A stretch of 64,000 nucleotides of DNA from Paraphysomonas bandaiensis (taxonomy: Eukaryota; Protista; Chrysophyceae): contig CBFFRP010000067.1 in the NCBI GenBank assembly GCA_965644295.1, forward strand, positions 1 through 64,000. Direction: 5' to 3'. Below, piece by piece: positions 27,464-35,540 of the stretch (position 1 is its first letter; the number at the start of each line of letters is the position of its first letter). A program made the translations under genes and the position numbers. The notes under the pieces are model-generated. The model searched no databases and was not told the origin of the DNA. It was given only the letters and a program-made list of their open reading frames with translations.

Positions 27464-29465
27464 GCTAGATGATGAGTTCGATTTCTTATTATGATGACTA
27501 TGAATGGTGACGATTACTCCAAGTATTGTAGTATATAGATTGTACTATTGAGGTTATTCTGGTCTAACCAGATTCAAATTGGTTCCTAGGACTCAATATT
27601 GCGTTACGGTTGGCTCATGATTACGTTTTAGTAAAGACAGGAGATATAACGTGAAAATTTTTAGTCCACTCCATAGATTATTCGCTTGACCAGCGTCTAA
27701 CTATTTGGATACATTGCAACTGTATTTCTCGACATAGTAATAAATTCTTCGGTTGAATCACCTTCAGGCATCTGACTTATATTACAGTCAATCTATACCT
27801 GAACTTCATCATTTACAAATAAGGTATAAAATATTTCCGAATAGATACAGCTTTCATGCACAGTGGTACAAGTGCACAAGTATAGAGTGAAGTACAAATA
27901 CTAGAGTCTAATTATCCTCTAGTTCTATCAGGTAACTTCTTGTCAAATATTCATGTCGATTACATTTCGTATTGCTTTCTAATCACTAAAAATAACGTCA
28001 CTAGTGCTGGGAACTCTTGACATAGGCTACTATGGGTGTACAACTGACAGTTGGTACTGGGTATCATTTGTACCTTTTCCTTAAGTAGCACACTCTCAAA
28101 ACGTCATCCACACATCAACCCATAACAATACAAATGCGTTCACTTTACTCTTTACTGACACTCTTAACTGGCAATTCTATCCGTATATAGTGATATTGAC
28201 GTTATCCGCATTGTGTAGATATAAACTGATAGTACTTATATGGCATACGCTACCAGTATTTGATTTCACTTTGTACAAGATATGGTTGACTGAAAATCTT
28301 ACAGGAGAGTTGATCTATCTCAAAGTGAGGATTGTAGCGTTGGTTCTAGGATTTCGAAAGTTATGTCACATCAGAAGATTTGAAGAGAAAGCCTATATTA
28401 GAAGTCTATAATCTTGTGAAGTGATGCAGAGCATATGAAGAAAATCTAACGAAGATAGAGAGAGTCAAGTATTAATAACTCCACTTGAGCGAGTATCATG
28501 CCTATTTTTCCACTCTGATTGAAAGTGTACACTGACATGAGTGTATGATTTAGGATTTATCATACAATGTTTAAATATAGATAAGGATATTGTGTTGAAG
28601 CATGGAGACAATTATCGACACGTAGCGCCTTCTTTGTGGAGGACAGGAAGTTATATGAGCTGGCACACTATAGTAGATGGTAGTCATAAAACGTGCTCTG
28701 TATCTGGATATGTACCAGTCTACATTCATATATAATAACTAGTAGATTGACATCAATTCAACATGCGTTGCTAAAAATATAGTTGTTAAAAATTAATGTT
28801 GTGACATTTTGTCGCTTGTGGTTGTATTTGTGAACACACTGACGATAGTGAGCTTATCAAATGCATTGTAAACACAACCGCAATTCATTTGAGTAGTCAA
28901 ACAAGTCTTGGACTACTAGTTATCGAACAAAAATAGCTTAGCATACCACTCAATCAATACGTCCAACAGATGCCACGAGGAGCTTCTTAACAAATCAGGT
29001 ATATGTCTTAACACTCCTGATCTGTGTACAGCAGTACTATTTACCCTACCTTGTCAGACCTCAGGCACAACTTCCATATCGTCATCTTGCCTTCAGCATA
29101 CTTTTGCACTTCTTATGATGCCTGAACAAAGCAGAAGAAGAATAGCCAGAAGTGTCGAATTCGCTGGTAACAACATCCCACTCCGAACTTTCGTCTCTTG
29201 ACAACAAGTTTTATAAATGGATTTCAACTCAGGGACTTTTTTGTTGCCTTCATGAGCTTCTTCTAAACTTGATAAATCCTTCATTATCTGATGATTCCGG
29301 CCTGGCCTGCCTTGTCTGCTTGAAGAATTCACCCCTCATTCGTTTGTCTTTTCAAGTGTGAACAGTTGTTCTATTTAACCCGTAATGATCGATACATATT
29401 TTAGATGCACTTATATTCTCCTCTGGCTAACTCAATAGGAAGGAATTGAGATCTAGATATGGTGT

Positions 29466-32400
29466 TCCTACCAGACAAGTCCAGAAAAACGAGAAAAGTT
29501 CTCACTCATCATCACCACTCACTATTCCCCACACCCTCAGATTAAAGGATGGCGGCAATTTATTTTTTTCTCCCTTTTTTACTATTTTTACTATTTTTAC
29601 CCTAAAAATACAGCATTCTATTGAGAAAAGGGTAGATGTAAAAAAGGTAATTTATTGCATACGGTTTACCCCAATAATGGAGCTCTATCTGTGGAAGAGA
29701 TAAAAGACGTGATAGACACATTAAAAGATAGCAACAAATACAAGACAATATCGACATAAGACAGCAATGTCACAACCCTTTAAAGGAAAGATAAAACGAG
29801 GTTTATTCGTGGCATCATTAAGTGGGTCATTCCAGTCGTTATTAAGCATCTTATTGAGCAAGCAGGCGATCTGGTAAGTATGAAGAAGAAGAGCAGTAGA
29901 AGGCCAAAAGTTGACTTAAATATACGGAGTCTATATATATTTATACTCATAGAGCGTATAACTTTTATCTTTTCTATAGTGAGAGTATGAAAATATGTAC
30001 AGAGTTGAAACACATTGACACACGCTCACACCCTTAATATGCATATCACCAGTATTCATCACAGTGAGCCCTTGAGCCGAGTGCACCTTCATAGACATCG
30101 TAAAAACATATAAATCATAAGTATATATACTGTGACAGCAGGTAACCCAAGAAATAATAATAAGCTTGTAATTTATTATTGCAATACAGATATATATTAT
30201 GTATACTCCAGGTGTTAGAACATGACATGTACATTGTATACTATATGCACGCTGTATATTTAGCTATATTTTGACATTTATACGCATGTTTATACGTATG
30301 GAGACTCTTATTTTACTAATTATACCCCTATCGCAAGCACTTACATGCACCACCCCAGCAGCTCCCAGAGGGCACCCAAGGCATCTGGTACACTCTATAC
30401 TATCTATGTCTATAATGTTTTTATAGCCTTGAAATTTCATCAATATGTGTTTTTATAACATGTTAATATACTCTATTTCTAGCTATACCTCAGAATCCCT
30501 TCAGCGTCTTTCAACTACTTCTCCCAGTGCCCTGATAAACTTGTATTACAATTCATTATTTCCCCGATATGGAATTGGTTATAGTCAAATATGTTTGCAC
30601 GACACATTACATACTATATACACACTATAAATCTATAGATATTAAAGCTACCGGAAACAGCCCTTCAACACCCCCAAGCGATGATTCAAACATTCACTTA
30701 ATTACCGAAATAATAATGATAGGAAAGATTGGCTAACTAAAATTATATATATTCAAACTAATCTAAGCAAATTCATGTACAAGTTTGTGTCAAATTTAAT
30801 TCTTTTGCCAGCTGCACATTCCATGATGCTTTCGACAATAACTCCCTGGGTTGTTCTGGACTTGGTCCACTGTCAAAAATAAGCCTTGTTTTGTCCTCTC
30901 GATGACGTATTGCTTCTAATTGATCTGGTGAAGGTAGTGGTACATCCCGGTATTTAATGTCGCAACATATGCACATATTACAGAATAATTTGACGGCATC
31001 ACTGGCATTGCCGTTCGGCATACGCATCAGCACATCTCTCAACTGTGGTACTACAAAGGCTTTGCTACGATTTCCAATCAATTCGAAGGCGGGAATGTTT
31101 GGCCACAGTCGACGCATTTCCTGGCTCGGCCGGCAAAAAAAACAAGTGAGTGGCATTAAGCACTCCCCCATCACCTGTTTGTCCAGGAAGTAATAACACT
31201 CGTCGATTACCCCAGCATTGGGGATCAGTTCACGAGCCTCTTCCTCACGCACGTCGCTGAGAAACTACAACAATTCTATATATCAGCAATCTGATAACTA
31301 CTCCGACAACTGACCTTGTCAAGTGCTTTGAAGTGAGTTGGAATAATAGCAGTGGCCATCTGCAGAGGCCTGTAAGAATCTAGAACTCTACTAACTTTAG
31401 ATGGGATTTTTATTCGTGAGTACGCCTGCACTAATGGTTTTAGAACTTTGTTCCCAATGTCGCGAGCATAGTTGAAATCACTGCCTCCATGTTTGAATCT
31501 TCTCATCTGATGGGCAGGCTCGGACAACTTAGCATCGGTGGAATCTCGGCGCCTCTTCTTCAGGAGGCTATTGCTTTCCCCTCCCACCTGTGACACGTGT
31601 TGCAGTTCACGCCAGGAGTTCTTGTCGCAACGAATCCGGTCTACCAGCAGTGAGCATAGCCGGGTCAAAGTGAAATCATCAGTAACCGACTTGGAAGTCA
31701 GATGACGAGCAAGCACGGAATTGGCATGCTCGATATATACCTGTTTTGTGTGTCTCAGTAAAATGATAATAGTACGCTTTAGTAGAATTAATTTACCTCA
31801 TTGGTCCAAGTACTGATTCCAGCGATGGCTCTCAGCCAATCGGGCCTCTTCTCTTTGCAATGGAGAATAATACATAGATGGTAGATGAAAACTCGCGTGA
31901 TTCTTGGCTTATCGCCGAAGGCAAACAATCGACAATAGGCAGGAAGGTATCTCCAGAAGTCCTCAATATCACCTGGTAAATACAAAACAATGGATAAGTG
32001 AGAGCTGCATAATTTTTTTGAAGTCAATTACCGTCGACAATTAGTTTCTCTAAGGGCTCTACCGTCACACGCAACATCACATCCAGAAAATATTTCATGA
32101 GCATTGTGAGGCTATTCGCATTGAAGTCCGCCTCACATTCCTCCTTAATATGCTCGTAAGCATTGAAGAGTATCTCTGTTATATACTTCATGCGCTTGTA
32201 ATTTATGATCCAAGTCTTGGTCAGCTCTCTCTGAGCGGCCATGAATCTTTTTACCTTGGGCTTATCTTCCTGACTATGTGCTCTCATATTGATATGGCGA
32301 GCGGAGGCAAATTCCGCAATGGCTTCCACTTCTCTCAGACCAGAAATTTGAGTGATCTTTTGGTCTTCCATAGCAGCGATAATTGATTCCCGTATGCTAC

Positions 32401-35037
32401 CTACTGAGTCCTCTTCATCATCATCTCCAGCTTCTACGTCATCCTCAGGCTCATCGACATCAGGCATATCCAATTCACCGTCTTCATTGGTGGAATCAGT
32501 ACGTAGTAATGCTAGGCATTTATCCAGACTGTAAAAATCTGATGCCGTAGCCGACATTATCCACTCTAAAATATTGCGTTGCAACTGGTCGTTGAATACA
32601 CTGGATTTCATTCGGAGCTGTTGCAACAGTGGGATAACAAGCATGATCATAAATATAGGGTCCCGCCAGTGGCACTCTGTAAGATGTTTGCCACAATGGA
32701 ATGGAGGGGGGAGTGGACACATCATTCGTGTTTCATCTCGTAGCGTTTGGGTAAGCCGCATCAGCTGCCAACCAAACTCCGGATCAAGTGGAAGTGCTAT
32801 CTCGTTAGCATCCGCTCCAAACACACCATGACATATCATTTTAGTTTCCACTTGAATATGTGATCTTCCATGTCCCGATTTAAACGGTAGATTCCCAAAG
32901 CTCCTGAAATCATGTAAACGTGCTCTGCCATTTCCAGAATTGACACATCTGACCGTGTCACCAATTTCATTTATATAGATGCTGCCATCTGCATTTCGCT
33001 TTAGCATTAGGTCTCCAAAATCCAGAATACCAACGCTACCGCTCATCACCGCGCACTCCGCTGTACTTCGTATCGAAGTGTTGAGGTCTGTGTTGACGCC
33101 ATCTCTGTCACATAATATATATAGCATTAATTCACAATATCGTTTGTGCTTGATATACATACCTCCCTTGATGTCTCTTCATTTCTGGAGGTTTCTGCCA
33201 ACCATGATACAGCGTGCTTAAGGTGTCATTTTGACGAGAAAAAGTCTTTCCACTCTTCATGGATTCTAGGGCCCATGATAACCTACACAGCAATTAGCAT
33301 AATACAATTTCACAGCAAGCTACTAAAATTAGCAAACAACGTAGTTACTGACTTACCGATTGAAATTATCAATTAATACAACGAAAAAATATTCGGGTTG
33401 CTTATCTTGTCCACGCGCATCGACCATATCTATTAAGTCTTGCCACACGCGGTTGTAGTACTGCTCCACGGATTCGCTAATGGTGTTCGTACAAGTGGTG
33501 TTGCTTGTCGTTATGTGCAGTCTGGATAAGGTATCAATTCCCTCAGTTGACAAACCACATTCTTTAAGTAGGGATGTTAACAGAAACACCCATGGAGATG
33601 AAACCTAAACATTATCAGATTCAAGCATTGTCAAAACATGAAATTGTATGTACCAACCGTTCCTTTTTTCCGTGCATTAAGAATAAAGTGCACCAACATA
33701 GACGTAGTAATCATCGCTTTATCCACCTTTGCGGCTAGACGAATGTTGTCAGGGTCTGTCTTCGATTTATTAGTATACTCAATTGGCAAAGGACTCAATC
33801 CTGCGGCGATTTTTTGGCGTACATCGTCGTTGCTAGATTTAGCTATGGCGTCTCTTTCTGATTTGGCCATGGAGAGCTGTAATATTAATTTGAACAAAGT
33901 CGGGGCAGCAATAGCATCTTGGGTCTTGCAGTCCCTCAGGAATGGGGCTACATCTCGAAGGCTGGGATCATTTGACATTTCATCATACGAGCCATATTCA
34001 GCCTGGTAGTGTCGACAGATTTCCTCTAGCTCATTATCAACAGCCTTCATTAAGGTGTTTATACAGTCTATATCATTATATGTAGTACTCGCGCCACCTG
34101 TGATATAAATTAAACAAAACCTCAAAGGTTATGCTAATAAATAAAATGTATATGCTATATATATGCATATGTGTGGTGATTCTACCGTCAGCTTCACTGG
34201 TCATTGCATTACCAGATCCCGCACTCGGGCTAACATAGGAGGGTGCTGGAGTTCGGACACCCCCTGGCTGGAAACAAAACCCAAACTTGTATCATCTTCG
34301 GTCTTGCTAAAGGATAGCAAATTGGCATATTTTTGCAAAGAATCTTTATTATTGTCGGTTGTTCCAGCAAAACAGTGTAACCCTCGATCAAATGGAATGA
34401 ATTCGGCAGCAACAACTTGTCGGCAGGGCCGCATTTCACTGCATGTTATGTCTCTATAATACTCTGCAACATGCAAAATTTGACCCATTTCTCTACACTT
34501 TTTCTTAATATATGTTCTCTTGTTTTCACTGGATCTTTGACTTCCCAAAGTGACGCCCAGAGCTGCCGCAAGGAAACTGAATAAGTCCGCACAGTGGCAG
34601 AACCAGACACCCTTGTGGTTAACGTAGTGGAGTATGAAGCCACCCAATGAGAGGTAGGGCATATTAGACTGCCTAATATCGATACTTAAACAGTTCTTAG
34701 GTGTTGTCATCGCGCCTTATGGCGGCCACTGGAACATATTTGTTATTTCATGACGTTCGCTTATTCACTGGGAATACTGACCTGATTACACACGGTAGAT
34801 ATTGTCAGTAAGGCACATAGTAGTAATAAGAGTCCTCTACAAGACTATATATATATATAAGTACCTTTATGCAGCCATACGCTCGATATGGTCGTTAAGA
34901 GGGACGTACATTAACGCTGAATCACGTACATAAACGCTGAATTCTGCAGACCAGAATATCTCCACTTCAACCCCCCCCCTACACACACTCCCATACAAAA
35001 AAAACAGAATTCATTTTTCTGGACTTGTGTGGTAGGA
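29466..35037 (-). mobile_element. 5572-bp TIR DNA transposon, Academ/DUF6589-like; 27-bp TIRs, 5-bp TSD GGTGT
   Basis: Left end TCCTACCAGACAAGTCCAGAAAAACGA (29466-29492); reverse complement of right end TCCTACCACACAAGTCCAGAAAAATGA (35011-35037), 2 mismatches. GGTGT lies at 29461-29465 and 35038-35042. Confidence 0.88.
30773..34710 (-). CDS. Putative DDE transposase (~1150-1200 aa, ~7 introns, one apparent frameshift near 34260)
   Basis: Spliced motifs GLSTEGIDTLSRLH, VVLIDNFN, LPLDPE, PPPFHCGKH, GDIEDFW...LFAFGDKP, NEVYIEHANS and C-terminal CxxC pairs; lies entirely inside the TIRs. Confidence 0.72.
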
Positions 35038-35540
35038 GGTGTGGTTATATATGGGGAATACATCCGGATACCGGATACAGATGTGAGGGATAAGAAATTA
35101 ACAGCCGGGATATGTAATCCGTAAAAGAAATATTCACAGTCGTACTTGTAGGCATAGTCATATGAAAACATATGTTCCAGCAGTGCTTGCCCATATACAG
35201 TACGTATATTTCCATAACACCATCCAGTATGGAAATTATCCAACGAAAAATTCCCCTTTTCAGTTCAGTTTTATCCCTTCGCTCTACATATATACGTATG
35301 TATGTGTCGACTGACTGTACTCTATATGGTGGTGTTGTTCTTCACCATTCAGAGAATCGTCACTCTATAGAGGTACTCTGTATATATATATATAGAGCTT
35401 ATTAATCTCTTATCACATCATGTATACATAATATAAATTGAAGTTACACTCTTTTTACAGAGCTGTGGCTCATGTTTGTTCCCTCATCACTAGTAAACTC
35501 TTCTCAGGAGGAGTGTGGTATTCATGATATAATATAACAA

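Follow-up and report, generated by a model that had tools for sequence, protein, structure and literature searches.

A recently mobile 5.6-kb DNA transposon encoding a DDE transposase of a rare lineage in the chrysophyte Paraphysomonas bandaiensis

Introduction

Among the described DNA transposons that come closest to the element reported here, P elements make 8-bp target-site duplications, and Academ elements have been reported in Puccinia graminis, a basidiomycete rust fungus. Academ duplications measure 3-4 bp in AcademX and 9-10 bp in AcademH, a difference that has been linked to the nuclease or helicase partner (PMC10045372). Academ is abundant in bivalves, and its curated elements average 5565 bp (PMC10294476). 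Duplications of 5 bp are made by Transib (PMC1131882) and by hAT5 elements (PMC12730594), and duplications of 4-5 bp by Ginger2 (PMC10045372). The wider CACTA/Mirage/Chapaev/Transib clade makes duplications of 2-5 bp and typically has CA...TG ends (PMC12730594). Here we describe a transposon with 5-bp duplications and TCC...GGA ends in Paraphysomonas bandaiensis, located in a stretch of 64,000 nucleotides (GenBank assembly GCA_965644295.1, contig CBFFRP010000067.1, positions 1 to 64,000 of the forward strand; hereafter the window).

The element is an intact, recently mobile cut-and-paste DNA transposon. We consider it very probable that it is autonomous and encodes a DDE transposase of 997 amino acids (aa) from a rare lineage, with the transposition cycle and the placement among known superfamilies that are proposed below. 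A preliminary description, made from the sequence alone, had called it a complete DNA transposon with an Academ/DUF6589-like transposase and atypical 5-bp duplications. Its view of a complete transposon holds, and we find an autonomous DDE element with a consistent 5-bp duplication. The kinship it proposed is a more complicated matter, to which we return.

Results

The element spans positions 29466-35037 of the window (5572 bp) and is bounded by 27-nt terminal inverted repeats, the left one at 29466-29492 on the forward strand and the right one at 35011-35037 on the reverse strand. The two arms are 93% complementary, with 2 mismatches. The left repeat begins TCCTACC and the termini of the element read TCC...GGA. 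The pentamer GGTGT stands directly outside both arms, at 29461-29465 and at 35038-35042, and the adjacent bases permit no extension either way, so that the duplication is limited to 5 bp. Both the 27-bp repeats with 2 mismatches and the exact GGTGT on the two flanks had been read correctly in the preliminary description. Subterminal repeats were looked for within the element and none was found.

To place these termini in a genomic context, we searched the 62.6-Mb assembly (669 contigs, with the window on contig C67) using 240 bases from each end of the element, and paired ends found on the same contig into complete insertions. Each query gave about 20 near-identical matches, whose alignments begin with base 1 of the inverted repeat and no earlier. 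Thus, the inverted repeats are not a chance pair. Pairing yielded 18 complete insertions, consisting of a single coding copy and 17 internal-deletion copies of 1.7-2.8 kb that carry the same ends. Duplications recomputed from these 18 loci were exact over 5 bp in 16, matched at 4 of 5 bases in one and were absent from one. Several copies therefore share inverted repeats flanked by duplications of fixed length, as is general for DDE transposons. Two of the 16 exact duplications lie inside an ATGT microsatellite (C432:47232-49558, locus L068, and C438:2972-5312, locus L070), and their length can thus be read as either 5 or 9 bp. We found no target consensus among the duplicated pentamers of the 18 insertions, which are 68% A+T versus ~61% for the window. 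The insertion that lacks a duplication is a 2766-bp derivative with intact ends (C392:8241-11006, locus L059), and may have arisen when two insertions recombined or when its flanks were rearranged.

The 17 internal-deletion copies are of four kinds. The commonest is represented by 13 copies of ~2.33 kb, in which 31292-34601 is deleted and which are 96-100% identical to one another. A second kind comprises two copies of 2385 bp (30838-34033 deleted) that differ by only 2 nt and are found at different loci, each with its own duplication. The remaining two kinds are single copies of 1715 bp and 2766 bp with other breakpoints. The presence of near-identical deletion copies at separate, duplicated sites indicates that the family is young and moved after the deletions arose.

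The 13 commonest copies are not simple deletions of the coding copy. In windowed comparisons, their first 600 bp, which correspond to the left subterminal block (29466-30065, on the downstream side of the gene), are 99-100% identical to it and their last 436 bp are ~97% identical, with only 50-84% identity in between. Comparison of the window with loci L056-L071 thus shows these copies to be mosaics, with an interior derived from a diverged relative. Such a structure suggests that diverged subfamilies exchanged sequence, by recombination or template switching, or that the ends were converted.

The genome also contains more diverged fragments of the family, whose protein identity to the last exon is 58-81%. 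Taken together with the near-identical copies, they indicate that the family has long resided in this genome and has recently undergone a burst. One such relative lies at C512:1718-2742 (L040, L077) and matches the last exons at 81% protein identity; it keeps the first 15 bases of the inverted repeat, followed by a 10-bp deletion within the repeat. The left flank of the window element (29190-29410) itself belongs to a diverged dispersed repeat, with loci on contigs C523 and C373 showing 74-76% identity to it. The window element thus probably inserted into an older repeat.

Every coding piece of the element lies on the minus strand. The transposase gene (30776-34204, minus strand) consists of 8 exons, at 34204-34186, 34097-33658, 33604-33357, 33282-33163, 33104-32032, 31972-31797, 31740-31315 and 31264-30776, which are separated by seven GT-AG introns of 50-88 nt. 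Together they form a frame of 997 aa, without internal stop, that is followed by TGA. The long coding exon occurs once in the assembly, and no source of enzyme other than this coding copy is visible for the 17 non-autonomous copies.

A HMMER search with the long exon recovered, at 100% identity, a 751-aa protein (P0001) from transcriptome MMETSP1103 (taxid 36769, genus Paraphysomonas), whose 90% cluster includes a 994-aa member, P0024. The match to transcriptome proteins shows that the transposase gene is transcribed and spliced. Relative to P0024, the window protein has two substitutions and one 3-residue indel; the transcript must therefore derive from an allele or strain that is not quite identical to the assembly. 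Exon sequences and the database proteins P0001 and P0024 served as input to the searches and to fold prediction, and the spliced window translation was compared with P0024 alone.

The preliminary description had predicted one intron-containing gene of ~1150-1200 aa. The gene with its introns is real and all of the motifs listed there (IDNFN, LDPE, PFHxxKH, GD...LF...K and YIEHAN) are found in the spliced product, but the protein is shorter, the excess being due to an upstream open frame of 171 codons that had been counted in (34204-34716, minus strand). We rejected this frame as the N-terminus of the transposase, since the transcript-derived protein begins after it and it bears no similarity to the N-termini of the relatives. 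The frame has no Pfam match either. The sequence at 34201-34204 is ATGA, such that the TGA of the upstream frame overlaps the ATG of the transposase. This overlap could allow termination-reinitiation or could be a coincidence.

The family to which this protein belongs is sparse. Among 1.84 billion clusters searched with HMMER, there were 23 representatives at E≤0.001 and 10 at 1e-10. The ten relatives that we looked up are, besides the Paraphysomonas transcript, unnamed or called "hypothetical protein", and stem from JGI/IMG, ENA and Logan assemblies; several relatives are 1170-1430 aa long. Two scans of metagenome contigs, and further scans of viral contigs and of prokaryotic genomes, revealed no loci of relatives. 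Word-based protein searches with the long exon, the family alignment or residues 195-740 of P0024 returned nothing, or the element's own transcript protein alone, and their candidate list was probably saturated by acidic low-complexity words.

We aligned 26 sequences of the family and counted conservation over the relatives that cover each alignment column. Two aspartates, a histidine pair and a glutamate stand out. D232 (codon at 33368-33370, minus strand, as are those that follow), in a DNF motif, is present in 17/17 relatives, and D383 (32783-32785), in a DPEF motif, in 24/24. The pair H412-H416 (32684-32698) forms an HxxxH motif that is invariant in 25/25 relatives, and E696 (31729-31731; E693 in P0024) is found in 14/15. 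S352, R580, R673 and D675 are further residues conserved across the relatives.

The AlphaFold2 model of P0024, built with the 26-sequence alignment, has a predicted local distance difference test score (pLDDT) of 70 and a predicted template modelling score (pTM) of 0.67, with a confident core at residues ~200-470 and 530-730. Its secondary-structure elements succeed one another in an order that agrees with an RNase H-like fold. D232 is placed in the first long strand (beta1) and D383 right after strand 378-381 (beta4); the His pair opens the helix that follows beta5, and the Glu opens helix 690-705, before which ~270 mostly helical residues are inserted. The model thus predicts an RNase H-like core, carrying D232, D383 and E696, that is split by a large all-helical insertion and has the invariant HxxxH after the second Asp.

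We compared the model with 48,161 representative structures using VIA-align, and ran the same program a second time on the list of matches found by Foldseek. Nearly all top ranks were taken by DDE enzymes. The P element transposase (6p5a) reached Z 9.2 over 277 aligned residues (model 199-732 against chain 200-569), and Hermes, a hAT transposase, reached Z 8.1 in the first run and up to 9.3 on the Foldseek list (7.7-9.3; ~280-301 residues; model 184-730). Lower down were ISCth4 (Z 7.4), Tn5 (7.3) and retroviral integrases (~6). The alignment ranges set D232 opposite D64 of integrase and D230 of the P transposase, and E696, like E572 of Hermes, E531 of the P transposase and E152 of integrase, falls 37-41 residues short of the point where the aligned range ends. 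We propose, from this model and the conservation across relatives, that D232, D383 and E696 are the DDE triad. Further along the protein, a C-terminal helical bundle (P0024 848-945) gave weak pyrin/death-fold matches over ~80 residues, with Z 5.2-5.9, which is below what is meaningful for helical bundles.

The prominence of Hermes raises the question of whether the element is a very divergent hAT member, akin to the hAT5 group. Hermes heads the Foldseek list and ties the best VIA score (Z 9.3, 282-301 residues). In the model, as in hAT, the predicted RNase H-like DDE core is interrupted by a large helical insertion that separates the second Asp from the Glu, and a His-containing motif takes the place that CxxH has in hAT, after the second Asp. 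The inverted repeats are short in both, and hAT5 families with 5-bp duplications have been documented (PMC12730594). Nonetheless, we think this explanation unlikely. The Pfam models for the hAT dimerisation domain, the BED finger and the hAT RNase H-like domain were all blank in the 26 members at E≤10. No sequence similarity to hAT was detectable, with the family profile failing to reach Hermes among PDB sequences, and the Glu of the element lies in a NE..IE..NS-type motif, unlike that of hAT. Furthermore, the P element transposase scores the same as Hermes (Z 9.2), and the structure therefore does not single out hAT. As for the P element/Kolobok group, the P transposase is a joint-best structural match, with D230 and E531 opposite D232 and E696 by alignment ranges, but there is no THAP domain and no match to the Pfam P-element model, and the duplication is 5 bp as against the 8 bp of P elements.

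The length of the duplication had also suggested Transib, for which the preliminary description considered 5 bp typical. Transib does make 5-bp duplications (PMC1131882), but so do hAT5 and Ginger2. Membership in the CACTA/Mirage/Chapaev/Transib clade would fit a 5-bp duplication, within the 2-5 bp of that clade (PMC12730594), and a DDE core with an insertion, and RAG1 aligns with the model over ~285-300 residues. However, RAG1 (Z 5.5-5.8) and HzTransib (Z 4.4) score clearly under hAT and P, the TCC...GGA ends are neither CAC-type nor the CA...TG typical of the clade (PMC12730594), and no Pfam match to it was found in the 26 members. We therefore regard such membership as very improbable. The predicted structure favours the hAT/P/IS256-like side over Transib.

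Classification by sequence was largely negative. Pfam recognised no meaningful family in seven exon-sized open frames, in the spliced protein or in the ten relatives. Eight other open frames of the element had no match either, and no XPG nuclease or helicase partner was found in the element; the ten relatives likewise had no helicase or XPG domain. The lack of such a partner had already been remarked on in the preliminary description. In contrast, the kinship with Academ/DUF6589 transposases proposed there was not borne out at the level of sequence models, as the DUF6589 model was blank for the exons, the spliced protein and the 26 relatives. A six-frame scan of the genome for DUF6589 was also empty, but carries little weight since it was equally blank in 14 control genomes. 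The preliminary suggestion of a possibly undescribed lineage fared better, in that no Pfam family covers the protein or its relatives.

The one piece of support for a link to DUF6589 came from language-model feature searches of the ESM Atlas. With the long exon alone, only weak bacterial DDE_Tnp_1 neighbours were found. With residues 195-740, 26 of the 30 nearest named clusters carried DUF6589 (PF20231), with a best score of 0.92 and 167 shared features, a level that the tool puts on the border that separates members of one family from distant or chance similarity, to be taken as a lead and not as a test. These clusters are commonest in Mollusca and Basidiomycota, and Academ is abundant in bivalves (PMC10294476), from which we infer that DUF6589 is the Academ transposase domain.

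These findings open the way to reading the element as a third Academ branch, with a DUF6589-type transposase that has no helicase or XPG partner and a 5-bp target stagger. In addition to the Atlas neighbours and their taxa, the element resembles AcademX and AcademH in encoding one large DDE protein of ~1000 aa and in its size, 5.6 kb as against a curated Academ mean of 5565 bp (PMC10294476). It departs from them in that the PF20231 model has no match, in its duplication of 5 bp versus 3-4 bp (AcademX) or 9-10 bp (AcademH) (PMC10045372), and in that Pfam found no partner gene in the element. The identity of DUF6589 with the Academ domain is, moreover, itself an indirect conclusion. We view a third Academ branch as quite possible, if short of probable.

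Discussion

Our combined findings are best explained by an autonomous cut-and-paste transposon that carries a transcribed gene and has recently multiplied, mostly in the form of deletion copies. We infer its cycle from the ends, the copies and the predicted fold. The transposase would bind the 27-nt inverted repeats and excise the element, with catalysis by D232, D383 and E696, and the two 3' ends would then be joined to target phosphates staggered by 5 bp. Filling of the gaps by host repair would produce the 5-bp duplication. Where gap repair was left incomplete after excision, internal-deletion copies retaining both ends could form, and the single coding copy would move these copies in trans. 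As for its placement, the transposase is most likely related, remotely, to transposases of the DUF6589 type, which are probably those of Academ, as part of the broad group of hAT/P/MULE-like enzymes with an insertion domain.

A number of results weigh against this explanation. For the window copy, neither an empty site with a single GGTGT nor an excision footprint was found in the genome; in the empty-site search, matches to the left-flank repeat end ~55 bp before the insertion point. The 5-bp duplication was read from the copies in the Paraphysomonas genome, and its extension to the whole lineage is tentative. At E≤10, Pfam found no family, DUF6589 included, in any of the 26 aligned members, and a profile search of PDB sequences with the family profile gave acidic low-complexity matches only and reached no solved transposase. 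On the structural side, Foldseek ranked Hermes first in the PDB with an E value of only 0.18, and the VIA-align scores of Z 7-9 are middling by the tool's own calibration. The correspondence of the triad, and with it the clustering of D-D-E in the RNase H-like core, was read from alignment ranges and not from residue-level superposition. The DDE assignment stands, despite these moderate Z scores, on the consistency of the list of structural matches and its agreement with the conserved residues.

In its mechanism the element is of an ordinary kind, and its interest to transposon specialists is that it may represent a new lineage or a third branch akin to Academ. The transposase lineage is rare and outside Pfam models. 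A literature search found no paper on Paraphysomonas transposons, and Repbase or Dfam may already hold the family. It is a tentative possibility that the element is the founding, still-active example of an undescribed superfamily-level DDE lineage, or else that it is a partner-less third branch of Academ. If so, the lineage would be marked by TCC...GGA ends, a 5-bp stagger and a D / D-P-E-F / HxxxH / E..N signature, and its known occurrence would so far be limited to one chrysophyte and to environmental eukaryote sequences without a name. Because no Pfam model flags the gene or its relatives, they are likely to pass for host genes when protist genomes and metatranscriptomes are annotated.

The case is unusually complete, combining one intact transcribed coding copy, young non-autonomous copies and a family alignment with a candidate catalytic signature. 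With the coding copy, precise ends and a family alignment in hand, both classification and a transposition assay are possible without reconstruction. New transposase lineages widen the map of how RNase H-like enzymes diversified and are raw material for genome-engineering tools, and the Paraphysomonas family may add one to them.

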